Below the pieces are notes generated by a model. It worked only from the letters and a program-made list of their open reading frames with translations. It was not told the DNA's origin and ran no database searches. 48,427 nucleotides of DNA from the NCBI RefSeq assembly GCF_001194135.2, contig NC_068996.1, positions 57,156,818 through 57,205,244 on the forward strand, in the 5' to 3' direction. Positions 2,611 to 46,582 of this stretch are shown here, one piece after another. This stretch comes from Octopus bimaculoides (lineage: Eukaryota). The first letter of the stretch is position 1; each line of letters begins with the position of its first letter. The position numbers were made by a program, and so were the translations under genes.

Positions 2611-3456
2611 ATCAGAGGCCTGTCAATGGGGATATCAGTCCACAGTTTTATATCAAGGTATGATATAATACATATATATATGTCATCATCATCATCATCA
2701 TCATCTTAATTTAATGTCTGTTTCCCATGCTAGTGTGGGAGTAGATAGACAGCCAACAACTGATGAAGGTCGTTCTTTATGTTACTTGTCCTGTTTTCCA
2801 TTTGTTTCTCTCGTTGTTTGTGTATTGAACTCATTTGTTTTCGTATTTCATGTTGTTACTGTTGGTGACGTCCTGTACCCATATATGCATATATATATAT
2901 ATATTATTTATATTNNNNNNNNNNNNNNNNNNNNNNNNNNNNNNNNNNNNNNNNNNNNNNNNNNNNNNNNNNNNNNNNNNNNNNNNNNNNNNNNNNNNNN
3001 NNNNNNNNNNNNNNNNNNNNNNNNNNNNNNNNNNNNNNNNNNNNNNNNNNNNNNNNNNNNNNNNNNNNNNNNNNNNNNNNNNNNNNNNNNNNNNNNNNNN
3101 NNNNNNNNNNNNNNNNNNNNNNNNNNNNNNNNNNNNNNNNNNNNNNNNNNNNNNNNNNNNNNNNNNNNNNNNNNNNNNNNNNNNNNNNNNNNNNNNNNNN
3201 NNNNNNNNNNNNNNNNNNNNNNNNNNNNNNNNNNNNNNNNNNNNNNNNNNNNNNNNNNNNNNNNNNNNNNNNNNNNNNNNNNNNNNNNNNNNNNNNNNNN
3301 NNNNNNNNNNNNNNNNNNNNNNNNNNNNNNNNNNNNNNNNNNNNNNNNNNNNNNNNNNNNNNNNNNNNNNNNNNNNNNNNNNNNNNNNNNNNNNNNNNNN
3401 NNNNNNNNNNNNNNNNNNNNNNNNNNNNNNNNNNNNNNNNNNNNNNNNNNNNNNNN

Positions 3457-4798: not shown

Positions 4799-5140
4799 TA
4801 CCTGATTATTATTTTTTTTCTAATATGTAATTCCTGTACATCAACCTCCAAACCTTCCAATATATCATATATAGTATGAGTATGTGTGAGTGCGCGCGCG
4901 TCAAATCACCCTCTGTCCATCTGTGTGATTATCTTTCTACGTAGAGGGATTGACAGACGAACAGACTGTTATAAAATCTATGACGTACATTTGATGCTGG
5001 AATAAAATACAAACCGACATTAATGCACCGAATGTGCGTGATAAGTCAGCTGTTTATTTAGCCCCGAGTTTATTTAGCTTCGGCAGCGACGATGATTGAG
5101 ATTATGTTGGCGGTAACGTTGACGGTGCTGCTGCTGATGC

Positions 5141-5141
<1 letters not shown>

Positions 5142-5199
<58 letters not shown>

Positions 5200-5209
5200 N
5201 NNNNNNNNN

Positions 5210-5277
<68 letters not shown>

Positions 5278-5570: not shown

Positions 5571-6986
5571 ATGACTTTAATTACAGAAAATACTTCTTTC
5601 ACATCGCTACTCCATAACTGATAGTGGTCTCCCTCATGGAGTTACAGACCAAAGGTGCAGGTAAAACCATTCCTGTACCAACTATCGCAGAATCTAACGT
5701 TTTCTCCTTTTTCTTTTTCGTTACTTTGTCTTTTCTCCTCTCTATCTTTTTCACCTTTTCTCTCTGATTTCATTCACTATCCTACCTTATAAAACCGAAA
5801 TCAGGCCACTCGCTTCTGTAAGATGGTACTTAACCGCATCCTTATAATGGAATTTCGAGGCCTTCCTATAACGACTTCTCTATTTCAGCTCACTATTGAG
5901 TATGACTGTGTTTGGTAGTTCATCAGTTTCTTAATTTGTCCACGATGCATTGTTTACATTTGAAAAGAATAGAACAAACGTACTAGTTCTACTGATTAGT
6001 ATAGTTTCCATTTTGTTTACAGCTTGATTCCTCGTTATTTTCACGGTCGATTTCCGAGATTCCCAAAACCAACAGTAGCAGACTGTATATGGCGAGCCTT
6101 CTCTAAGTCCAAGCATTTAGCTTCAGAAATCCTATTGCCTAAATATACGAACGTCTTCATTACCTTTAAACACTGATTCATGATCAAGATGATTGGAGAT
6201 CAAGATATTTCGGCACCTCAGATTCAGATTGATACATGGCATCATTCTTCATTATGTAAATCGATAGAGAGATGTCTATTGCCACACATTCAAAATGATG
6301 CGTAATTTTTCTGAATGTCTTCCAGAGAAAGAGTCACAACATGAGTCGTCAGCGAAGAGAAATGCTACAATATATATGATATATATTCTAGAACTTCCAA
6401 ACGGATCTCTTTGTCAGCATAGGTTCGACAGACCGCTATTCACTCGTATGCAGACAGAAAACTCCATTTCAGTTCTTATCATCAGTAAGCAATAATCTCA
6501 GTAATAGAGTCATGGTATTGGTCTTTGTTTTGACTATTTGTTTCTACAAATAGAACTTCAGTTAAGATTCTAATTGCCTCCTCGAGTGTCACTGGCAAAT
6601 ATAATGAGTAACGTCAGGCATTAGCACTCATCCATACTTCAATTTTCCTGTCCTACGAAGACGCAAAGGGCTTAGATTCATTGACGTAATCAGGGACTTC
6701 GAACTAAAGTAAAGGGATTCTATCATGTAAGTGAATTTTTCCTGGCATCCGAATCTTATGGGTAGCTATCATTAAATGTATTTTGTTCGGTTCTGCTAAT
6801 TTCTTCTGGTATACCAGAGGCAGAAAACCATATCCATGCATTCTGAATCCACATTCAGTTTCAATAAAAATTTCTACGTTGAATTTTTTCATTCAGATGA
6901 TGATTAAGAGGATCATCCCGACTATATCAGATAGAGAAATCCCCCCATAGTCCAAGCATTCACTTCTTTCACCTTTCTTTCATATA

Positions 6987-11419: not shown

Positions 11420-12619
11420 TATACAAATAGTAAATGAGTATATGCATATATACGTACAGGTATGNNNNNNNNNNNNNNNNNNNNNNNNNNNNNNNNNNNN
11501 NNNNNNNNNNNNNNNNNNNNNNNNNNNNNNNNNNNNNNNNNNNNNNNNNNNNNNNNNNNNNNNNNNNNNNNNNNNNNNNNNNNNNNNNNNNNNNNNNNNN
11601 NNNNNNNNNNNNNNNNNNNNNNNNNNNNNNNNNNNNNNNNNNNNNNNNNNNNNNNNNNNNNNNNNNNNNNNNNNNNNNNNNNNNNNNNNNNNNNNNNNNN
11701 NNNNNNNNNNNNNNNNNNNNNNNNNNNNNNNNNNNNNNNNNNNNNNNNNNNNNNNNNNNNNNNNNNNNNNNNNNNNNNNNNNNNNNNNNNNNNNNNNNNN
11801 NNNNNNNNNNNNNNNNNNNNNNNNNNNNNNNNNNNNNNNNNNNNNNNNNNNNNNNNNNNNNNNNNNNNNNNNNNNNNNNNNNNNNNNNNNNNNNNNNNNN
11901 NNNNNNNNNNNNNNNNNNNNNNNNNNNNNNNNNNNNNNNNNNNNNNNNNNNNNNNNNNNNNNNNNNNNACAGAGGGAGGAAGTAGAAGAATAGGTGAGCA
12001 ACGAGAGGAAAAGAGAAAGAGAGGAAAAACGAGGGGGGAAAAGAGATACGTAGTAGTAACAGAGGAAGAACGAGAGGGGTAAAGCGAGATACGTAGTAGT
12101 ACAGAGGAAGAACGAGGGGGGGGGGGGAAAGAGAAAGAGATAGAGTAGCATACATGTATACATATACATATGTGTGTGTGACTGTGTGTGTGTTTGTGTG
12201 TCTGTGTTTGTCCCCCCAACATCACTTGACAACCGATGCTGGTGTATTTACGTCCCCGTAACTTAGCGGTTCGACAAAAGAGAATGATAGAATAAGTACT
12301 TGGCTTACAAATAATAAGTCCTGGGGTCGATTTGCTCGACTAAAGGCGGTGCACCAGCATGGCCACAGTCAAATGACTGAAACAAATAAAAGATTAAAAA
12401 GTATTGTAGAAACAATTGAGCACCGTACTAATATGCATTTATGTACTGGAATGAAATCAAAGTCGATTACAGGTAAGTACCAGTCATATACTTGGATTTA
12501 TTCAGTCGATTACCAGTGAGGTACAGGGGTCAATTATATCGACGGCAGAACATAATGCTGTAAGTGTGACGTCTTTGAGAGACCTTTAGGACAGGGATGG
12601 TCGGTGTATGTGGACAATA

Positions 12620-12770: not shown

Positions 12771-13258
12771 CGCAAACTATTAACCTCAAACGCCAGCTGT
12801 CAACGCTCATGATGGCTTGAGATACTATCTTACTTTAAAACAATCCGGCGGCGGTGGCTGCAGCAGCAAATGTTGTTGTTGATGTTGTTGTTGTTATTGT
12901 TGAGCGTAAAACCAGACTTGATTCGGCCGTCTTTTGATCAAAGGTGGTACAATTGTGATTATCCAATCTTTATTCAAACGTAATATATCTTGGATTCCAT
13001 TAACCAGCCTGCTGCTTTTTAAAAAAGTAGTGGATTGTAAATAAATTTGAGAGAGATTTCGTTATTGTTTCTAGCATCAGCATACATACATCCTTAACTT
13101 CTTCCTTTTAGTTATCAAGTTGACATATCTTTCAATATAGCGATTGGCAACAAAGTCGGATTGGTCAGTGTTACAGACCATCTTCCTTACTATAGGAATT
13201 CCTTACCCCTTCACTTTTCTATTTTCATTTACTTATTTATGTATTTATTTTCTTTCAG

Positions 13259-13352
13259 ACGGAGATTTGCGCAAGTACCCTTACAGATATTATTCAGGGT
13301 GTGGTCAGTGGTGCAGATGGCTGCATATTTTCCTTTGGATATTCACGAGCAA
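13259..13352 (+). CDS. KIF26: Internal coding exon of a KIF26-like (kinesin-11) motor domain, up to the P-loop
   Basis: Polypyrimidine tract ending ttttctttcAG (13258) and donor GTAAGT at 13353. The 94 nt (phase 0 to phase 1) translate without stops as [31 protein letters not shown]+A. This aligns with vertebrate KIF26A as I recall it ([36 protein letters not shown]), with [13 protein letters not shown] identical. No neighbouring exons found in the ungapped sequence. Confidence 0.9.
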
Positions 13353-13639
13353 GTAAGTCCTCTTTGCTAATTTTTAGACTATAATCAAGTCATTGGAGCA
13401 TCCTCCACCCCTCATTGAGTTTATCTGAAATTTCGAGTCAACAGACGTTATGATGGCTGCTGACTAAATACAATTCCTAGATATCAAAAAGAAAAAAATA
13501 TTGCCCAACGATTGATGGCCGACCCAATAAAGTACCGAACGATTAATTGAGAGGTTCGTTGTGTCCATAGTCAAGTTAGTTAACTGTCAAATATTCAGTC
13601 CATCTAGATGTAAAGGATCCCAACCTACCCCTTAAAAAT

Positions 13640-14070
13640 AAATTTCTTTTGTTTCTACTAAAGGACAAGTTCTGGGATTTGGGGAATTGGGCTAGTCGAC
13701 TACATCAACCCCAATTCTCGACTGATACTTATTTTATCGACCTGAAAGTATGAAAGACGAAATTGGCCTCTGCGGAATTTAAAGCTAGAGCGTGAAACCG
13801 GACAAAATGCCGCTAAGCATTTTGTCCGGTGTCTTAATGATTCTGCCCGCTCGTCACTTTTTAATAATGGTTTCAATCAAGGCCAGTAATTTTGAGGTAG
13901 GAGTAAGTCGATGACATCTACCCCAGTACACGACTAGTACTTATTTTATCGATCCCGGAAGGATGAAAGACAAAGTCGACCTCGGTGGAATTTGAACTCA
14001 GAACGTAAAGATGTACGAAATGCCGCTAAGCATTCTCCCCGCGTGCTAACCATTCTGCCAGCTCGCCGCG
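13640..14070 (-). mobile_element. Two tandem family A SINEs (13640-13855, 13870-14070)
   Basis: Each has GTCGAC..CATC.ACCCCA..ACTTATTTTATCGA..GATGAAAG, the GGAATTT.AA B box and AAATGCCGCTAAGCATT. Confidence 0.85.
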
Positions 14071-14979: not shown

Positions 14980-15400
14980 CAGCAGAATCGTTAGAGCGTC
15001 GGAACAAATGCTTTGTGGTATTTTGCTCTTGCTATTTTTGAGTTCAAATCCTGCCGAGGCCAAACTTATCTTTTCATCCTTTCGGAGTCAGTAAAATAAA
15101 GTTCCAGTTGAACAATGAAGTTGATAATATCGGCTGAAACCCTGCCCTAAATTTGCTGACCTTGTGCCAAAATTTGAAACACTTGTCATTATTATTGTTG
15201 TTGATAAGGCAACCAGCGGGCAGAATCATTAGCAACCGGACAAAATGATTAGCGGCATTTCGTCCATCAGTACGTTCTGAGTTCAAATTCCGCCGAAGTC
15301 GACTTAGCCTTTCATTCTTTCAGGATCGATGAAATAAGTACCAGTTGAGTACTGAGGTCGATGCAATCGATTTATCCCCTCTTCTAAACAAAAATTTCAG
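14980..15400 (+). mobile_element. Two tandem family A SINEs (14980-15185, 15205-15400)
   Basis: GCAGAATCGTTAG head, GAGTTCAAATCC/GAGTTCAAATTCC B box, TTTCATCCTTTCGG motif and CCTTGTGCCAAAATTTGAAAC tail. Confidence 0.85.
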
Positions 15401-15543
15401 GCACAGGTGGTAAGAAGTTTGCTTCCCAACCACACGGTTCTGGGTTCAGTCCTATTGCGTGTCACCTTGGGCAACTGTCTTCTATTAAAGCCTCAGACCA
15501 ACCAAAGCCTTGTGGACGGAAACTGAAAGAAGCCCGTTATATG

Positions 15544-18135: not shown

Positions 18136-20053
18136 GTTGTATAATCCTGGGGTGTGGAAAACTCAAGAATTGCTCCGGGGGGNNNNNNNNNNNNNNNNNN
18201 NNNNNNNNNNNNNNNNNNNNNNNNNNNNNNNNNNNNNNNNNNNNNNNNNNNNNNNNNNNNNNNNNNNNNNNNNNNNNNNNNNNNNNNNNNNNNNNNNNNN
18301 NNNNNNNNNNNNNNNNNNNNNNNNNNNNNNNNNNNNNNNNNNNNNNNNNNNNNNNNNNNNNNNNNNNNNNNNNNNNNNNNNNNNNNNNNNNNNNNNNNNN
18401 NNNNNNNNNNNNNNNNNNNNNNNNNNNNNNNNNNNNNNNNNNNNNNNNNNNNNNNNNNNNNNNNNNNNNNNNNNNNNNNNNNNNNNNNNNNNNNNNNNNN
18501 NNNNNNNNNNNNNNNNNNNNNNNNNNNNNNNNNNNNNNNNNNNNNNNNNNNNNNNNNNNNCATGTTTCTTATTCGGGCAAATCTTTACCGTTTTTTTGTT
18601 TATTTTATTTATTTGTTTATGTGTAGTCTTTTTTAATTTTTCGAAAGGTAACTGAAATCTTCAAAATTATAAAAATTGTTGTTTCTTTTTTTTTTTTTTT
18701 TTTTAAGCATACCTTGGTTCAAGAAAAATAATTAAGGGCATCGTGAAAGCGTCATATTTAATTAAAACTAAGAAACATAATTCACGATGATGAATAATTT
18801 GTATTTGTCAACTGAAAGGTAGAATCACTGAAATTATACATAGATAGAGTTTTGCAAATGATTCGAAAATTCATCTTTGAAAAATCAAAGTCATTAGCTT
18901 GAATTTTCAAAACCAAATGTGTGCATTTTTTTACCCCCGAATTGTGAAATCAGAATTTCCAGTACTAAATTCCACCATTCCTTTCCTTGTATTCATGTGA
19001 ATCTACCTTTTCGATTCTGAAAACAATAAAGACAAAATGCCTTTCAACATTAAAAAAACGTAGAAATTCCCTTCTGAATATCATCACTGACAAATATCAA
19101 GAGGCAGTTTGATAAATTGTGCCAAAACAAACACTCACACCCAACGGAAGATATTCCTTGTTACCATTTTTTTAAATTTTTGTTTTATGTTTTGTTCTGT
19201 GCGGCTGATAAAGTTTTGTATTGTTTTTGTTGTAAATTGTATATTTTTTATATATATAATCACACATACGGATTTTATTATTTTGTTACTCACTGATATT
19301 TATACCACTGAAAGAGGGCCGCAAGAAAATACATCTGGTAATAAAGGGACCATATGGGAAGGTTATTTAAGAAAAGATAGTACAGAAAACTTGCTTTCTA
19401 AATTGTGCTGTTTATTTGGTTGCGATTGTGTTGTGTATACGTTATAGTATCGAGTGGTGATTGTGCTGAATAAGAGTCATGTTATACTATTGACCAATAT
19501 ATGTGTAGAATATGTTGTGTGGGTTAGCATAATGTCAGGTGTTGATTGTGTAGAATGTATGATGAGTAGATTGTGTTATTTTATTAGGTTGTGATTGTGT
19601 TGTGGCAATAGTGTTGGGTATTGTATGTGTTGTGTGAGCTGGAATCCAGCTGCCGACCATATATCTTTCGACGACCATGTCACTCTGAAAACATTTGTGG
19701 TCATTGTCGTCTTAAACGAAATAAAGTAATATTGAAGATGGGAAAATATTGGTCCACGTTTCATAATCTTTCGGCGCAAGCTACTTTACATAATCTGAGC
19801 TTTTTCTTCCGTTCTTGTCTCCTCCCGCAACTATTAATATGCCGTAACTGTTGCTTTGAACAGTTTTGTCCGTGCTGAGTCCTTCTATGCCAATCCTCCT
19901 CCTCCTTCCCCTTCAAATTTTACTTCTCTTTCTGTCAGTGCTACATTGATTCCTTTTTTTTTTTCTTGTTCTTGATAAAAATCATGGCATCAATTTCTTT
20001 ACAATTTAACAAAGATCTCTTCTTTCAGACGCTCTTCAGTTTTCTTAGACTTC

Positions 20054-20785: not shown

Positions 20786-21407
20786 GAGTGAGAGAGAAGT
20801 GCATGCCATCAAAGTTAGGCTGGGGTACAAATATGCGAAGCCCATTATACCCATCATGACTACCCGTCTGATAAGGGTACACCAAGCACATGCATCACAA
20901 CTATGTGTGCGTGACATGGTGATCTCATATTAAGATAAACAGCGCNNNNNNNNNNTGCATCACAACTATGTGTGCGTGACATGGTGATCTCATATTAAGA
21001 TAAACAGCGCATGAGCTTGCAGGTGGAGCCCAGTTAGAATTTTCTTCAGGTCGAGTAGCCCATCCTGGTCAAAAGGTCCCTGAATAAGGTTTGTTTAAGT
21101 ATGTTGAGCAAAACACCCATGTTTCCAAAGGTGATTTTTTCAAACCCCAAAGAACTCCTCTCAACACATGGCTATGATGCTCCCCCACTACTTCTGCTCG
21201 TGATCAGAGATGCACATATCGTCAGCCACCAAGGGACATGCTCAACTGGTTAAGGTCAAACAACTGACCAGCAAATCTGTGGCATTGAGCAGAATATTTG
21301 TTGTAGTCCGTCTTTTATATCAAGACAAAACAATGTACATGATAACACTTCCAATCAATTAAGATCAGAAGCCATGAGAGCCACTGCCTGGTACTGCATC
21401 CGGGCAT
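20786..21407 (-). mobile_element. ~570-bp (after removing the gap duplication) non-coding interspersed element flanked by (TAA)n-like tracts
   Basis: Non-coding. Bounded by ttatt repeats on the left and tttattgttgttgtt on the right. No tRNA A/B boxes or TIRs seen. Contains a 10-N gap with a 55-bp overlap artefact. That it is a multi-copy family is recalled, not shown in this window. Confidence 0.6.
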
Positions 21408-23616: not shown

Positions 23617-24465
23617 CGTTAGATATATAGAGAGAGTAAGTTTTATTAGCATAGTGAGATATGTGTCTATGTGTCTGTGTGTGCGTACATGCGGCAATAT
23701 AAACAATACAATACATAAGACAAGCCTTCGTATGAACAATAGTATGTATACAGTAATAAGTGTGTATGTGAGTGAGAAATACAGAGCATGGAATGAGAGT
23801 CTGTAACATAGACTAAGAGAGTCCTGAACACAAAGATAGAGAAATACCAGTTCATAGAAGAGTTACACAGTAGGTAGAATATCTGTGCAAGAGATCGTGG
23901 CCGAATAGCAGAGCTGAGGTGTCACATGTTGTGTGTGAAGTTGAGCGTCGATGTTGTGACCGGTTATTTGGTACAGAAGATCCTCGTAGGTTGGTTCTGG
24001 CTGTTATTTTCATGGTGGAAACAATCCACACAAACAGTGTTGAGATGGAACCGCGGTTGCTGTTGGTAGCGTGTACTCTGGTGGTGGTGTTGGTGCTGGC
24101 AACGGAACTGTTGTAGACAGTAGATCGGTGGTGTTGTCGTCGCTGGAAAGTGGCTGGTTGGTGTGTGGTCAAACGACCAGACCTGTGAGAGGTCTGAAGT
24201 TGAGACAAACTGGCGTGGATGAAAGAGGGTTATTTATAGATTAAAAAAAGGGCTCCGGAAAAAGCAGAAAAACTCTCTCTCACGTGACCTTAACAGAAGG
24301 CCACGATTGGTCGGTATGCACCCTGGGGCGAAACAGAACTGGAGACAAATGCCGCGCAAATAAGAACCAATCAGGGTGGTGGATACAACGGTCCAAGCGC
24401 CGAAAGCTAGATGTTAGCCGCTACGTTATCATTCGTAAATAAATACCCGAGAGAGAGGTTTCACA
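23433..24465 (-). mobile_element. Solo LTR (probably Gypsy/BEL type)
   Basis: TGT...ACA termini. On the minus strand, in order: CCAAT-box motifs (24305-24310, 24367-24371), CACGTG (24281-24286), TATAAATA (24231-24238), AATAAA (23642-23647). Flanked by TTGGACT on both sides. No gag/pol. Confidence 0.75.
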
Positions 24466-24659
24466 TTGGACTCAATTATACAACTTTTATTTATATTGTT
24501 TGGCGTTCATTATTGTTGTTGTTTGAGGCGGGTAGAACGGATTTTGGTTAATATTAACAGCAGAATCGCTAGCNNNNNNNNNNCTTTTATTTATATTGTT
24601 TGGCGTTCATTATTGTTGTTGTTTGAGGCGGGTAGAACGGATTTTGGTTAATATTAACA

Positions 24660-25260
24660 GCAGAATCGCTAGCACGCCGGGCGAAATGCTTAGCGGTATT
24701 TCGCCTGTCTTTACGTTCTGAGTTCAAATTCTCCCGAGGTCGACTTTGCCTTTCATCCTCTCGTGTTCGATAAAATAAGTACTAGTTGAGCACTGGGGCC
24801 GATATAATCGACTTACACTCTCCCCAGAAATTTCCGGCCTTGTATCAAAATTTGAAATCAATATTAACCTTTTCTACTCTAGGCACAAGGCCCGAAATTT
24901 TGGGTGAGGGGGAGTCGATTAGCTCAACCTCAGTATGCAACTGGTACTTAATTCATCAACCCGAAAGGATGAAAGGCAAAGTCGACTTCGGTGAAATGAA
25001 TATTAACCGCACGTGGTATCAGATCGTCAGCAATCATGAACCTTTACAAATTCATGAATTTATTGGCTCGGAATGGTGGATCGGTAGAATCATTAGAAGC
25101 GTAGCAAAAAATGCTCTGTCATATTTATTCCGGCACTTTACGTTCTGGATTTAAAACTTGCAGACGTTGACTTGGCTTTTCATCTCTTCGTTATCAATAA
25201 AAGTACCAGTTGAGTATTGAAATAAAATACACCCTGCAAATTTTAGGCTTTGTACCTATA
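24660..25260. mobile_element. Cluster of three family A SINEs (+, -, +)
   Basis: 24660-24860 (+; GAGTTCAAATTC, TTTGCCTTTCATCC), 24870-25000 (-) and 25075-25260 (+, older). Confidence 0.82.
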
Positions 25261-25739: not shown

Positions 25740-25797
<58 letters not shown>

Positions 25798-25811
25798 TCT
25801 CTCTCCCTCTC

Positions 25812-25844
<33 letters not shown>

Positions 25845-25845
25845 T
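25740..25845. repeat. (CT)n microsatellite
   Basis: Directly visible. Confidence 0.97.
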
Positions 25846-26954
25846 TGTTTTTCTCTCTCCCACTTTGTTCTTTTTCCTCTTCTCTCTCTATGTCTCTCCT
25901 TTCTGTTTTTTTTCCTCGACCTTTCTATCTCTCACACACACACACAAAGAGAGAATTGTTCCCGCTGTGTTTATGTTAGAAATCATCAGTGTTATTAATG
26001 CCACCATAGTCGTCGTCGTCGTCGTGTTTTTCATTGTCAAATATTTCTCTTTTATGTTTACAGTTGCGATGACATTTCCGTTTATGACAAATACTGTTGC
26101 TTCATCTAGCTTTTTTTTTATTGTGCTTTTGTGCTCTTTTTTTTTTTCCATTCAAACAAAAGTTTATTTTATTTTGTTTTGCTTTTTTTTTAAATACATC
26201 TGAAGAGAATGTACACTCAGCCAACGGAAATATTGACCATGCAGTAGCAAGCATTTCATGTTTATTCATTATATTCATCAGAAATGCCTTTTTTTTTTAT
26301 TAATGATCATTACAATTAGAACTTAACTTTTTTTTTCTTTTATTTCTGTTTGTAGTTAAATAATTTTACAATATCCTGCAGGAATACTGTTGTGGCAATT
26401 TTGTTTCATCTTATCTCGCAACAGTTATGAATTCAATGTCTGTCCCAGTTTGTGACGTAATGTTAAACATAACGACCTTATATTTTCCAATTGATTAACG
26501 GCAGAAAAAAAAGGTAAGGAATCATAATGAACCAACCAGATCCTTCTTGCTAGAATAGCAACAGCTGGTTAATTCCACCAAGTCAGCAATTCTTGGATAC
26601 TGAACGAGTTCTTGCAGAATAGCTTCGTGACTTTGTCGGTATCTCGGTCAGTCCCGACTGACGGCATTTCCAGTAAAGCTCATTCCGAACCGATTAATAC
26701 CTCCAAATAATATGGTGAGGGATATACAGACGTTGTCGAAAATGCCTGGACGTTGTTCAAAATATCTGGAATAAAAGATCTACGAAATAGACTTGTGTAG
26801 TTTTAACAAAACATTAGACAGACTAGTCCTAAATATACAAAACAAAACAAAAAATCTAAAAAACTGGTATCGTCATGTTTGGGTTGCCTTTGATCAGAGG
26901 CGAAGTGAATTAGAGCTGATTCGGGAGTAAATAACAACAATCATTCACCTAGGT

Positions 26955-31150: not shown

Positions 31151-31245
<95 letters not shown>

Positions 31246-32409: not shown

Positions 32410-33000
32410 TATACTTTTGTTCTTTATCCACAAAAGTATTGTTTGAATAGAAGTTTTCTTGATTTTGGTTCATCATGCCAATGAAGGTTAATGATCCAGA
32501 AAGTTTGAAGAAGCCTATCAAACTTTGAAAATTCTCTCCTGAATACCAAAGACACTTCTCACAATCCTTCTTCCTTGGAATACATTTCTCTGGAATTCCT
32601 TCCCTGCTCATTCATTAACTGCTGACTTTGATCCAAATAAGTTTAAACCGAATATCAAATATAAACAGGAAATTATAGGCCTATAATTTTCTGCTTATAT
32701 TTCTTATACTTCTCCGATGACAGAATACCCAGCATTTGGAACCTTGGATCAATATGATAATCCAGTAACTGAGATATCCCAAAAACAGCTGTAAGAGACT
32801 ATATCTACATCTATTAATTCTATTTACATTGTATTAGCATTAACTCTCTTAAATTAAACTAAACTAAATAAACTTAGTCCTGCCTTGAATAACCGTTTTC
32901 CTCTTCTTTAACTCATACCTACTGATTCTAAGGTAAGCTACTAACTATCGATTCTCTTCCAACTGGACATTTGTGCTAGCATAACTCCAGCCACTATTTC
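32410..33000 (-). mobile_element. CR1-clade LINE 3' ORF remnant
   Basis: GLSY*.RFQMLGILSSEKYKKY..KIIGL, KCIPRKKDCEK and KFDRLLQT resemble LSYWERL.MLKLYSL.RRRERY..KII.GL, FNCIPK and LDRLLQTIPD. Confidence 0.62.
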
Positions 33001-33244
33001 AACTGGGATCCTAGTGGCTTGTCAATTGGAGTGCTCAGACTGCATCTTTATTAGTTTCGGTCACCTTGTCCTAAATTCCTCATCTTATATATGTATATAT
33101 ATATATATATATATATTTAAATGTAGATATATATATATAGTGAATACCTGCCCTGTTCTCTCTATATTTATGTCGTTGTCATCACATTCATGTTGATTTT
33201 TCCATACTTGCATGAGTTGGATAGCCACCAGCCACCTCTTATTT

Positions 33245-33472
33245 CTTTATTGCCCACAAGGGGCTAAAGATAGAGGGGACAAACAAGGACATACAAAGGG
33301 ATTAAGTCGATTACATCGACCCCAGTGCGTAACTGGTACTTAATTTATCGACCCCCCTGAAAGGATGAAAGGCAAAGTCAACCTCGGCGGAATTTGAACT
33401 CAGAACGTAGCGGCAGGCAAAATACTGCTAAGCATTTCACCCGGCATGCTAACCACTCTGCCAACTCGCCAC
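33245..33472 (-). mobile_element. Well-preserved (young) family A SINE
   Basis: Reverse complement reads GGTGGCGAGTTGGCAGAGTGGTTAGC...GTTCTGAGTTCAAATTCCGCCGAGGTTGACTTTGCCTTTCATCC...TGTGGGCAATAAAGAAATAAG. Confidence 0.9.
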
Positions 33473-35209: not shown

Positions 35210-35515
35210 CATATGCATATACATGGATATTTACATACACATATAGATAGACAAACCGACAAACAGACAGATAGACAGACAGAAAGAGATAGACAGACAG
35301 GCACACACACACACACACAACACAACACATATATACACATGTACATACATGCATACATACATACATGCACGTATGCATACAGACATACATACATACGTAC
35401 ATACATACATACACACACATACACACATACATACATACATACATACATACATACATACATACATACATACATGCATGCATACGTACATACATACATACAT
35501 ACATGCATACATGCA
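35210..35515. repeat. (AGAC)/(CA)/(TACA)n compound microsatellite
   Basis: Directly visible. Confidence 0.96.
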
Positions 35516-36030: not shown

Positions 36031-37192
36031 TTAAGGACACACAGGCAGACACAATGAAAGAGGGGAAGAAAATAACTGAACCGTAGTACAGGTCTGGAAC
36101 TCTATTTTATTAATCCCTGGAAAGATGAAAGGCAAATATGACTTCAAATGGATTTGAACTGAGAGTAGTATATCCATTTCAACACCAAATCACTCTCTAC
36201 CATCTTAGAAAAAAAAATGCATACATTGAATAATGTTAGTCTAGGGTCAGTGTGCCTAAGAAATATAAGAGATTGGCATCATTAGATTACTTATGGTCAT
36301 AAGTCCGATAAGTGAAGGATAAACTGGTAAAGCATGACTAAACAACAACTGCAATACTTCATTTGTTAATCCAAAGGTGAGGTTCACACATAACTTGTTA
36401 TTTCTATTGATATCAGCCCACTCCTGGTTCTATGATATAAACTTCCAGTTTATGTCCAAAACACCAGTTTAATAATGCCAAAGTTGTCTTTCTAAATTCA
36501 TTTTTTCATTTATTGAAACAAAGGCAGTGCATTTCAACAGAAATATGATAACAAGACAGTGAAAATTAAAAAAAAAAAAAGAAAACACTGAAATACTAAG
36601 ATGTAACCAGGGAAAGACATCTGATAATTAACAGCCAAGAAATTCCTACACAACACAATTTTGCTAAACTAACAATCCTACTTGTAGAAACAAATGCATG
36701 GATCGGGAAATGTTCCTAGTGTTAATTATATTCTGAAACTCTTGTCAAAACTACACACTTTTTGTGAAGTGTACAGGTTTAGTTGATGTAATTAATCAAA
36801 ATAATTAATCTCAATGCCAAAAAAAGTAAGAGGTAAAGTTGACCCCTGCATGATCTAATAAGAGGACAAAGCTAAATACTACCAGACACTCTAAATGGAG
36901 TAGTGAACTAACAAAATAATCTCTACAAAGACATTCAGCCTGCTAGACACAGCAGTCTGGTCTCTTTCAATCTCCATTTTGTTGTCTTAAACAATTATTG
37001 GATTATGTATTTGGGTGATCCTGGTTTCTGATAATAGGCTTGCTTTAGTACAGCAGTCCTAAGGCTAAGCAACAACAAAATCAAGAAATATTGTTAGAAA
37101 ATACCTTAAAAATATTCACAAAAGATAAATACATCATGAATGATATATTTGCTTGCAGTCAGAAAACATAAAGGATATTAATCTTGCTAGAA

Positions 37193-37405
37193 TGGATGTT
37201 ATTCTTGGTGGTAAGGAAGGTGTTTTTATTGGTAAGGATGTTATTCTTGCTTGTCAGGTAAGGACATTATTCTTGCTGGTAAGGACAGTTATTCCTGGTA
37301 AGGATGTTATTCTTGTGGGTAAGGATGTTATTCTTGCTGGGAAGGATGTTATTCTTGCTTGTCAGGTTGTTATTATTGCTGGTAAGGATGTTATTTTGGC
37401 AGATA
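37193..37405. repeat. Degenerate 21-bp minisatellite (GGTAAGGATGTTATTCTTGCT), ~10 units
   Basis: Repeated units read in frame as GKDVILA. Confidence 0.93.
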
Positions 37406-39180: not shown

Positions 39181-39270
39181 AAAAAAAATATATATATATA
39201 TATATATATTTTTGCTGTAGTTTCAGCTCAGAACTGCGGTCATGCTGATGCACTGCCATTTGTGTGTGAC

Positions 39271-39378
39271 ACTTACTGCACCTAGGTTTCCCAAGCGGTC
39301 ACCCATCTAAGTACTCACTAGGCTCGACGTTGCTTAACTTCGGTGATCGGACGACAACCGGTGCTCTCAACATGATAT
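39271..39378 (-). pseudogene. 5S rRNA pseudogene (or 5S-derived SINE head)
   Basis: Reverse complement ATATCATGTTGAGAGCACCGGTTGTCGTCCGATCACCGAAGTTAAGCAACGTCGAGCCTAGTGAGTACTTAGATGGGTGACCGCTTGGGAAACCTAGGTGCAGTAAGT aligns to molluscan 5S from about nt 11. Several substitutions; no oligo-T terminator. Confidence 0.93.
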
Positions 39379-39421
39379 ATATATATATGTATGTATGTAT
39401 GTGTATGTATATATATATGTA

Positions 39422-39659
39422 CAGGGTGCGATGGGTTAATTGTTGCCATTTTATATTTTTTATTTTATGTGTGCACCTTGTTATTTTTTTATTTTGTTGA
39501 CTACACAGTACAGTAGGGTCAGTTAGGCATTGTCTGTGAGTAAAACAGCACCATGGCACAATTCACTCTGCCAGAAATTTGAAAACAAGCCGAGTTTCAT
39601 GTCCAATGAAGGAGATGACGTTGGCATGGGTGCCATTCGTCGAATTTAGTTCACACCTG
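39422..39659 (+). mobile_element. 5' end of a maT-like element joined to a different mariner-like end
   Basis: TA|CAGGGTGCGATGGGTTAATTGTTGCC followed by ~165 bp homologous to 41537-41375. Ends TTCACACCTG|TA. Confidence 0.78.
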
Positions 39660-40755: not shown

Positions 40756-41534
40756 CAGGGTACAGTGAATATATTGTTGTCTAAATTACGCAAAAATGAA
40801 AACAACACTGACATTTCATTTTAATAGATATATTTTACCAAAATTACATCAAAATGTTTTGAAATACTAAAGACTAAATTTATTCAATAAAATCGGCAAT
40901 GACTTCAACCATGGAATCTCCTGCAACTCTTCTGAACGGTCTCCTTATTTAAGTTGGTGAATGCTGCCATAATCCTTGCTTTTGCTTCATCTTTGGCGTT
41001 TCAAGGCCAGATGATAGGGGTGATGTGGTTGTAGAAATTGTCTGACAGCCATGACTGGGTTCTCCTGCTTGTGTGACATGGTGCAGAGTCCTGTTGCCAG
41101 AGATAGGGTCTTCCAGCAACCACCCTCTTGACTCAGAGGGGCACTATCTCCTCCAAGCACTTGATGTAGGCCTCCATGTTGAGTCTGAGGCTGTGTGGGA
41201 AGATGAATGGAGGCATAATGTCGCCATCACTAGTGATCCCTCCAAACACCCTGATGTTGGCTGGATGTTTGATTTTTATCACTTTTGGTACATGTCCTCA
41301 GATTGACACCCAAACACTCTGAAAAGTTTGAATTGGTGCTTCCAGCGTGAATGCCAAGCAGTACAGCATGTCATTTCCAAATTTCTGGCAGAGTGAATTG
41401 CATCATGGTGCTGTTTTTCTCACAGATAGTGTCCAACTGACCCTACTATACTGTGTTGTCGACAAAAGCAAAAACAAACAATGCACATGCATGAAATTAA
41501 AAATATAAAATGGCAACAGTTTACCCATCGCACC

Positions 41535-41537
<3 letters not shown>
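40756..41537 (-). mobile_element. Internally deleted maT (DD37D)-like Tc1/mariner element
   Basis: TA on both flanks; degenerate 26-bp TIRs (CAGGGT...TGTTGYC). Remnant KHPANIRVFGGITSDGDIMPPFIFPHSLRLNMEAYIKCLEEIV..VKRVVAGRPYLWQQDSAPCHTSRRTQSWLSDNF..IWP. Confidence 0.92.
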
Positions 41538-41577
<40 letters not shown>

Positions 41578-42397: not shown

Positions 42398-43392
42398 NNN
42401 NNNNNNNNNNNNNNNNNNNNNNNNNNNNNNNNNNNNNNNNNNNNNNNNNNNNNNNNNNNNNNNNNNNNNNNNNNNNNNNNNNNNNNNNNNNNNNNNNNNN
42501 NNNNNNNNNNNNNNNNNNNNNNNNNNNNNNNNNNNNNNNNNNNNNNNNNNNNNNNNNNNNNNNNNNNNNNNNNNNNNNNNNNNNNNNNNNNNNNNNNNNN
42601 NNNNNNNNNNNNNNNNNNNNNNNNNNNNNNNNNNNNNNNNNNNNNNNNNNNNNNNNNNNNNNNNNNNNNNNNNNNNNNNNNNNNNNNNNNNNNNNNNNNN
42701 NNNNNNNNNNNNNNNNNNNNNNNNNNNNNNNNNNNNNNNNNNNNNNNNNNNNNNNNNNNNNNNNNNNNNNNNNNNNNNNNNNNNNNNNNNNNNNNNNNNN
42801 NNNNNNNNNNNNNNNNNNNNNNNNNNNNNNNNNNNNNNNNNNNNNNNNNNNNNNNNNNNNNNNNNNNNNNNNNNNNNNNNNNNNNNNNNNNNNNNNNNNN
42901 NNNNNNNNNNNNNNNNNNNNNNNNNNNNNNNNNNNNNNNNNNNNNNNNNNNNNNNNNNNNNNNNNNNNNNNNNNNNNNNNNNNNNNNNNNNNNNNNNNNN
43001 NNNNNNNNNNNNNNNNNNNNNNNNNNNNNNNNNNNNNNNNNNNNNNNNNNNNNNNNNNNNNNNNNNNNNNNNNNNNNNNNNNNNNNNNNNNNNNNNNNNN
43101 NNNNNNNNNNNNNNNNNNNNNNNNNNNNNNNNNNNNNNNNNNNNNNNNNNNNNNNNNNNNNNNNNNNNNNNNNNNNNNNNNNNNNNNNNNNNNNNNNNNN
43201 NNNNNNNNNNNNNNNNNNNNNNNNNNNNNNNNNNNNNNNNNNNNNNNTACATATGTATATATATATATATATATATGTATGGATATATACATATGTATGT
43301 ATTTGATTCTTTAGATGTGCTGGCCTCCTGATAATTACTCGATATTAATTAATATATGATTAATTACCAGATTTTATAATAATATGTATGTT

Positions 43393-46430: not shown

Positions 46431-46461
<31 letters not shown>

Positions 46462-46548
46462 AAGAAGAAGAAGAAGAAGAAGAAGAAGAAGAAGCAGAAG
46501 AAGAAGAAGAAGAAGAAGAAGAAGAAGAAGAAGAAGAAGAAGAAGAAG

Positions 46549-46582
<34 letters not shown>
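46416..46582. repeat. Compound (AAT)(AAG)n(AAC)n microsatellite, followed by a family A SINE remnant (46583-46670, -)
   Basis: Directly visible. Confidence 0.95.

Follow-up and report, generated by a model that had tools for sequence, protein, structure and literature searches.

When the codon for a conserved glycine of a kinesin P-loop begins with A in the genome of a cephalopod, is the glycine restored in RNA by A-to-I editing, or has it simply been lost? The question is raised by a single exon in the octopus DNA analysed here, a stretch of 48,427 nucleotides referred to below as the window. An initial sequence-only reading assigned the exon to a KIF26-like kinesin, placed the second glycine of its Walker A motif in a codon that is split by an intron and starts with A, and offered both answers: either editing of that base (A13352), with consequences for nucleotide binding and for splicing, or a motor that has lost its P-loop.

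The exon, its splice sites and its gene

On direct reading, the exon end as first described, GYSRA and a split codon starting with A in front of a GTAAGT donor, is accurate to the base (Table 1). The open frame begins exactly at 13259, and the homologous exon in a genomic contig from another mollusc (L002) starts on the same codon, also after TTTCAG. At the 3′ end, which reads ...GGA TAT TCA CGA GCA A, the split codon makes the following intron a phase-1 intron. The exon frame is intact and the splice sites are consensus, the donor CAA/GTAAGT matching MAG/GTRAGT at 8 of 9 positions with its sole deviation at -1. The in-frame open reading frame of the window across the exon measures only 27 aa. 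In-frame read-through of the donor gives AGT AAG TCC, or S-K-S, with a stop after 11 codons, and by coincidence this S-K-S (13352-13360) equals the protein's true S-K-S across the splice junction. For that reason a tblastn alignment runs 3 residues into the intron, an overrun that is a trap for calling the exon boundary by similarity. A GT further downstream (Table 1) was rejected as donor, being poor and in conflict both with the phase-1 intron position kept in L002 and with the diversity of residues after Gly (E, Q, W, D and others) in the single-exon open reading frames of other species. With it the Ser codon, AGT, would be wholly exonic, so that the residue is Ser under either donor.

When 1.84 billion representative proteins were searched exhaustively with HMMER for the 31-aa exon peptide, 89 hits came up at E <= 1e-3. 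A word-index search for homologues gave no candidate for the exon and its read-through taken together (43 aa), and for 138 aa of the Octopus protein it gave fragments from outside the cephalopods alone, the Octopus proteins themselves not among them. The peptide is 100% identical to residues 329-359 of a 1941-aa protein (P0003), the Octopus vulgaris 'kinesin KIF26B isoform X2' (CAI9734877.1), whose 90% cluster also contains O. sinensis XP_029648872.2 and XP_036367637.1. All 87 of the significant matches that bear the motif are KIF26-like, and those with names are KIF26A or KIF26B from mammal, fish, arthropods, molluscs and a brachiopod. With so short a query, the 31 aa taken alone score under the 29.3-bit cut-off of the Pfam Kinesin profile (PF00225; E=0.16, 11.4 bits). 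Membership of the kinesin superfamily comes by way of the orthologous Octopus protein with the identical exon, whose motor domain matches the same profile at E=1.2e-48 (166 bits) and has KIF3B, KIF3C and kinesin-1 as its best PDB matches (E ~1e-29 to 1e-27). The motor signature is FAFDAVF...DGC(I/L/V)F(S/C/T)(F/Y)G(H/Y), lacking both IFAYGQT and DLAGSE (for the motif description see PMC3387196). These similarities make it an exon of the octopus KIF26B orthologue, a 'non-motor' kinesin of the kinesin-11 family, and existing Octopus annotation already names the gene KIF26B-like.

The next exon had been expected nearby. In the 48-kb window, tblastn with the whole O. vulgaris protein found this exon alone and no other exon of the gene, and motif scans together with KIF5B and approximate KIF26A probes likewise brought out no neighbouring exon there. 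The O. sinensis KIF26B-like gene spans 141 kb, and the flanking exons are therefore placed outside the window, with introns of >13 kb upstream and >35 kb downstream, provided that no N gap conceals an exon. Two resemblances within the window were dismissed as chance: a 'KSYTVGR' at 23858, tried as the next exon, has the wrong phase and a stop in front of it, and a 'CIFISFGH' stretch at 33041-33076 (+), in an open reading frame at 32945-33193 (...DICAS...CIFISFGH...), has no splice sites, no Pfam match and a different spacing.

Table 1. Features of the window (positions counted from its first nucleotide)
Positions	Strand	Feature	Details
13239-13258	+	Polypyrimidine tract and 3′ splice site	ATGTATTTATTTTCTTTCAG; read directly; acceptor TTTCAG/ACG, junction 13258/13259
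13259-13352	+	KIF26B-like (kinesin-11) coding exon	94 nt; 31 aa and first base of next codon; motor-domain segment leading into the P-loop
13348-13368	+	Hairpin of 6 bp, AGCAAG/UUUGCU, with 9-nt loop	Sole predicted local structure (ViennaRNA MFE and partition function)
13352	+	Last exon base, A13352	First base of split Ser codon A/GY (G/GN in other species); donor position -1
13353-13358	+	5′ splice site GTAAGT, CAA/GTAAGT	6/6 intronic positions equal to consensus
13357-13362	+	Alternative GT, TAA/GTCCTC	4 nt downstream of donor; weak, unlikely; would also give Ser
13694-13853, 13878-14067, 15215-15402 (-), 24660-24842 (-), 33297-33472, others		SINE-like interspersed repeats	~160-180 nt; copies 72-84% identical
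2-357, 5135-5263, 25740-25898, 31152-31243, 35327-35512, 37171-37395, 46432-46550		Dense microsatellites and one 21-nt tandem array	
2915-3456, 5200-5209, 11465-11968, 18183-18560, 20946-20955, 24574-24583, 42398-43247		Seven N gaps	

The rest of the window

Two of the SINE-like copies stand in tandem from ~340 nt downstream of the exon and do not pair with it; ARAGORN detected no tRNA-like head in the SINE-like repeats. The microsatellites are of the (TGTA)n, (TGA)n, (TC)n, (TG)n, (ACAT)n and (AAG)n types. Inside the KIF26B-like intron, 5S rRNA (Rfam RF00001, 78.6 bits, E=4e-15) is matched over its full length on the minus strand at 39270-39388. The matching sequence is probably a 5S pseudogene or a 5S-derived repeat and not a working gene, since it adjoins an (AT/ACAT)n microsatellite at its 5′ end and lacks a T-run after its 3′ end. 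The adjoining sequence, 39383-39585, is repeated in inverted orientation at 41374-41576. The flanks of the 10-nt gaps at 20946 and 24574 are exactly duplicated (55 and 90 nt, 100% identity), and this looks like a scaffolding artefact.

A serine under the second Walker A glycine

Four Octopus proteins all read GYSRA-S-KSHTMFG, the annotated continuation being GYSRASKSHTMFG. With Ser in the protein and A as its first base, the codon is therefore AGY, and by the annotated protein the next exon should start with G followed by T or C, in keeping with the expectation that it would start with G. The place of this residue in the motor is arrived at in several ways. On the Pfam Kinesin profile, exon residues 3-28 fall on positions 58-83, which brings the split codon to about profile position 87. 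In a phmmer comparison with PDB chains, 'ifsfgysraskshtmfg' is aligned to KIF3B 'IFAYGQTGTGKTYTMEG', Ser pairing with the second Gly of GQTGTGKT, and in a MAFFT alignment Ser lies under the second Gly of KIF5B GQTSSGKT. The canonical Walker A, GxxxxGK[S/T], is thus absent from the Octopus protein, which has G-Y-S-R-A-S-K-S.

Among 87 motif-bearing kinesin-11 relatives, the column of the second Walker A glycine holds Gly in 84, Ser in 2 and Val in 1, the last being a butterfly single-exon open reading frame that reads on into an intron. Ser is restricted, within these 87, to the Octopus cluster and one related, cephalopod-like species. The bearers of Gly include Manis KIF26A, teleost and frog KIF26B, the sea spider Nymphon and insects and, in the lophotrochozoan set, the gastropods Littorina, Patella and Elysia, the bivalve Sinanodonta and the brachiopod Lingula. 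Both the initial alignment of the split codon to this glycine, backed by Pfam, phmmer and the 84 of 87 homologues, and the statement that a codon with A in first place is not Gly, given the Ser of the annotated Octopus proteins, have stood up.

Many of the short hits are single-exon open reading frames that run into an intron, and the residues they show after Gly vary (K, E, Q, W, D and others), as is produced by read-through of a G/GT... junction; a phase-1 intron therefore lies inside this codon across bilaterians. The L002 exon is likewise of 94 nt, of the same phase and with a TTTCAG acceptor, and it ends AGA CAA G/GTTTGT. With G as its last base, the octopus difference comes down to a single G-to-A at the last exon base, and on the distribution of residues Gly clearly appears to be the ancestral state. 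In the comparison of orthologues that had been suggested as a check, the gastropods have Gly and the cephalopod-like relative has Ser in its mRNA, encoded by AGC.

The relative that shares the serine

The second bearer of Ser, P0005 (1670 aa), and its cluster mates come solely from Logan assemblies of SRR27666078, SRR27666076 and SRR27666072. The contigs concerned (L001, L007 and L008) are of 6-6.7 kb and have an uninterrupted 5-kb open reading frame for a gene that in Octopus has huge introns; they are therefore transcripts. P0005 and the Octopus protein have an overall identity of 57%, which rises to 85% in the motor region, where other molluscs reach 66-74%. From these values its source would be the closest relative found, not an Octopus and most likely another cephalopod. 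All three contigs read GGA TAT TCC CGT GCA AGC AAA GCA, or GYSRASKA, and the AGC has two consequences: the Gly-to-Ser change is an old one, common to both lineages, and most of the mRNA of that species has A at the site. Over ~5.8 kb the three contigs show 6-7 differences of mixed types, with one A/G mismatch, so that editing differences at majority level are not visible in this transcript.

Two further features of these contigs may be recorded. The residue after the Walker A Lys is Ala (GCA, positions 1118-1120 of L001, and also in L007 and L008) and not Ser or Thr; as the contigs are RNA-derived, the Ala codon may stand as GCA in the genome or come from heavy editing of ACA (Thr to Ala). Beyond the 3′ end of the KIF26-like sequence, L008 has on the opposite strand, at 6164-6598 (-), a BUD31-like open reading frame, which suggests either convergent genes with overlapping 3′ UTRs or a chimeric contig.

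Catalytic state of the motor

In the MAFFT alignment, switch I is SSRSH in KIF5B as against LRHSH, SRHSH, ARSSH or GRSSH in kinesin-11, and switch II is DLAGSE in KIF5B as against DLGSCS, DLGSSS or DLGSCE in all of the kinesin-11 sequences aligned. The Gly and Glu that serve gamma-phosphate sensing and the salt bridge are thus lost from the kinesin-11 switch motifs. The orthologous Octopus protein has EELRHSH and DLGSCS, where the canonical forms are NxxSSRSH and DLAGSE; the exons for these segments are outside the window.

The family was already regarded in this light. Neither IFAYGQT nor DLAGSE is present in human and mouse KIF26B, and mouse Kif26b remains microtubule-bound when ATP is supplied, without ATPase-dependent microtubule release (PMC3387196). 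In a recent review KIF26A/B and VAB-8 are described as non-motile proteins that 'lack a functional P-loop' (PMC12646758), and kinesin-11 is reported to be ATPase-inactive and constitutively microtubule-bound (PMC3387196, PMC12646758). Judged by its motifs, the Octopus KIF26B-like protein would have neither ATPase activity nor motility. The suggestion in the sequence-only reading that the motor has lost its P-loop is well supported, there being a genomic Ser in at least two Octopus annotations, the same residue in the mRNA of a relative, degenerate switches and the literature just cited. Further loss of the P-loop in an ATPase-dead family is the mundane expectation.

Substitution, editing or another explanation

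The reading preferred here, with a probability of roughly 85%, is that a kinesin-11 motor already without activity underwent a plain Gly-to-Ser substitution in the genome. On the branch to Octopus and at least one relative, a G-to-A change at the first base of the second Walker A Gly codon would have turned GGY into AGY, the genome then encoding GYSRA-S-KS in place of GYSxxGK[S/T]. It is proposed that the change was tolerated because the motor was already dead and the intronic half of the donor is perfect. In a motor domain without catalysis, and in a family of microtubule-bound scaffolds or regulators, loss of the tight phosphate-binding turn would carry little cost, and the intact intronic GTAAGT would offset the A at -1 and leave the donor still strong for U1. 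The protein would be mostly or entirely in the Ser form, and no RNA editing would be needed to explain the sequence. The exonic and intronic halves of a 5′ splice site are known to trade off against each other, and the contrast between the octopus donor and that of L002, where G at -1 is kept beside a weaker intronic half (GTTTGT), would fit this. Tolerance would in sum be a matter of relaxed constraint, of compensation within the splice site and of a motor that does not bind nucleotide. On the other side, GK[S/T] is found in 84 of 87 despite the degenerate pocket, which hints at some constraint on the loop in most lineages, and hints too that loss of the Walker A Gly in cephalopods is not obviously neutral.

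That ADAR edits A13352 in neural pre-mRNA or mRNA, AGY being read as GGY and part of the protein regaining its Walker A Gly, is considered improbable, and that such editing is appreciable in octopus neural tissue, restoring Gly and at the same time strengthening U1 pairing at the donor, still less probable. The codon arithmetic fits, a Ser codon with A in first place being AGY and AGY to IGY giving Gly (the relative has AGC), and with Gly ancestral the position falls under the definition of a 'potential restorative site' given in PMC6881472. In coleoids, kinesin-1 is one of many neural proteins subject to recoding (10.1101/2022.09.25.509396; PMC4384741), and at the GluR-B R/G site there is precedent for an edited exonic base 2 nt upstream of a donor that affects splicing (PMC1920255). 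The favourable A-A-G context that had been pointed out is confirmed on the sequence: A on the 5′ side, where ADARs disfavour G, and the favoured G on the 3′ side are well tolerated, though as evidence this is weak, about 1 A in 10 having such neighbours. Given this context and the extent of coleoid editing, partial S-to-G recoding is possible.

However, the structure on which an ADAR would act does not emerge. A 401-nt segment of the pre-mRNA is predicted to fold less stably than its shuffles (z = +1.23), and the predicted hairpin of Table 1, present in windows from +/-60 to +/-400 nt and lost at +/-700 nt, where the site is unpaired in the MFE structure, is too short for an ADAR substrate. 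No inverted repeat covers A13352 within +/-1 kb, the only one that touches the exon (12 nt, 92% match) ending 6 nt before the site, and a blastn-short comparison of the exon +/-60 nt with the whole 48 kb returned no reverse-complement match >12 nt. An editing-complementary sequence, not seen by eye, was not found by computation either; within the window the site has no predicted extended duplex, though a partner could still lie in the outside exons. In the spliced mRNA of the relative, the +/-200 nt around the site are also without unusual predicted structure (z = +0.54).

Nor does conservation of the flanks point to editing. Between the window and L001 the exon is identical at 67 of 94 nucleotides, and of the 24 codons for identical amino acids 15 differ synonymously, including the two codons just upstream of the site, so that synonymous divergence is not reduced. 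Conserved cephalopod editing sites, as Liscovitch-Brauer and colleagues are said to have found in 2017, typically lie in conserved flanks. A is read in each of the three RNA-seq contigs, which come from three runs, so that editing is not the majority state in the relative. Against appreciable restoration there is also the median level of restorative editing in coleoids, which is <2.5% (PMC6881472). The published editing tables consulted, from the supplements of PMC8382921 and PMC4384741, have no KIF26 entry, and in the preprint on kinesin recoding (10.1101/2022.09.25.509396) KIF26, kinesin-11 and the P-loop go unmentioned. A restored Gly would not in any case restore catalysis, switch I and switch II being gone, and with the rest of the catalytic pocket lost the notion of a tunable switch acting on nucleotide binding is weakened. 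As to splicing, the edit would indeed improve the match of the donor to the AG/GT consensus, but there is no sign that the donor needs it. Editing of A13352 is left with the codon test and an acceptable neighbour context in its favour and with the duplex, the complement, the synonymous constraint and the RNA contigs of the relative against it, and is unsupported, if not formally refuted.

The plain substitution has two other rivals. It is scarcely credible that the A is an artefact and the real gene encodes Gly, whether through a mistake in assembly or sequencing, through a private SNP, or because the copy in the window is a pseudo-exon or pseudogene. The window is repeat-rich, with seven N gaps and a single exon of the gene, but the 141-kb span in O. 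sinensis accounts for the absent neighbours, the intact frame and consensus splice sites do not suit a decayed copy, and the same exon peptide followed by Ser is present in models from other, independent assemblies (O. vulgaris, on a contig of 58.8 Mb, and O. sinensis GCA_006345805.1), with Ser also in the mRNA of the diverged relative. The identical Ser of the O. vulgaris and O. sinensis proteins effectively refutes the assembly error or SNP that had been allowed for at the outset. Very improbable, too, is a gain of function in which Ser in R-A-S-K, a minimal basophilic-kinase R-x-S motif, acts as a phospho-switch for microtubule binding; that the phosphate would occupy the former nucleotide-phosphate pocket of the relic P-loop is pure speculation. 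The YSRASKS context is read directly from the sequence, Ser is kept in two lineages whose proteins are only 57% identical overall, and KIF26B is phosphoregulated elsewhere in the protein (PMC3387196). However, R-x-S motifs are very common by chance, Ser would be just as likely to persist in two species if it were neutral, the motor domain being slow to evolve, and the proposal is otherwise pure inference.

Relation to known systems

Within kinesin-11 (vertebrate KIF26A and KIF26B, C. elegans VAB-8 and yeast Smy1p, a non-motile family) the best homologues of the Octopus protein are KIF26B or KIF26A. It shares with the family the Pfam Kinesin motor, the change of IFAYGQT to (I/L/V)F(S/C/T)(F/Y)G(H/Y) and that of DLAGSE to DLGS..., and differs in that other bilaterians keep GK[S/T] (84/87), whereas Octopus and one relative have SK[S/A], the last Gly being lost too.

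The GluR-B (GluA2) R/G site resembles A13352 in being an exonic A that opens its codon (AGA to IGA, Arg to Gly) and lies 2 nt upstream of a donor, and its editing affects the protein as well as how the neighbouring intron is spliced (PMC1920255). The R/G site is, however, paired with an intronic editing-complementary sequence (PMC1920255), whereas here there is a predicted 6-bp hairpin and no complement in the window; moreover the GluR-B edit lowers splicing efficiency, whereas an edit at A13352 would shift the donor towards consensus. With the restorative ('harm-permitting') sites of coleoids the position has in common a genomic G-to-A, a conserved nonsynonymous position and a neural-type gene (PMC6881472), but the signatures of structure and conservation are absent here and the RNA contigs of the relative carry A. 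The recoding of cephalopod kinesin-1 described by Rangan and Reck-Peterson also concerns a coleoid kinesin motor domain, with recoding proposed to tune function, but kinesin-1 is an active transport motor (10.1101/2022.09.25.509396).

Implications

By itself the finding matters little: the gene is annotated, its family is regarded as ATPase-dead, and a degenerate P-loop is expected variation. A13352 is all the same a textbook case of a 'potential restorative editing site', at position -1 of a donor and in a lineage that edits heavily, and if it were edited, recoding, a Walker motif and splicing would be linked, with a restorative site in the nucleotide-binding loop of a pseudo-motor. With GK[S/T] kept in 84 of 87 relatives despite a dead pocket, the cephalopod Gly-to-Ser is a natural experiment on a relic loop, whose possible roles include nucleotide binding without hydrolysis, or a structural one.
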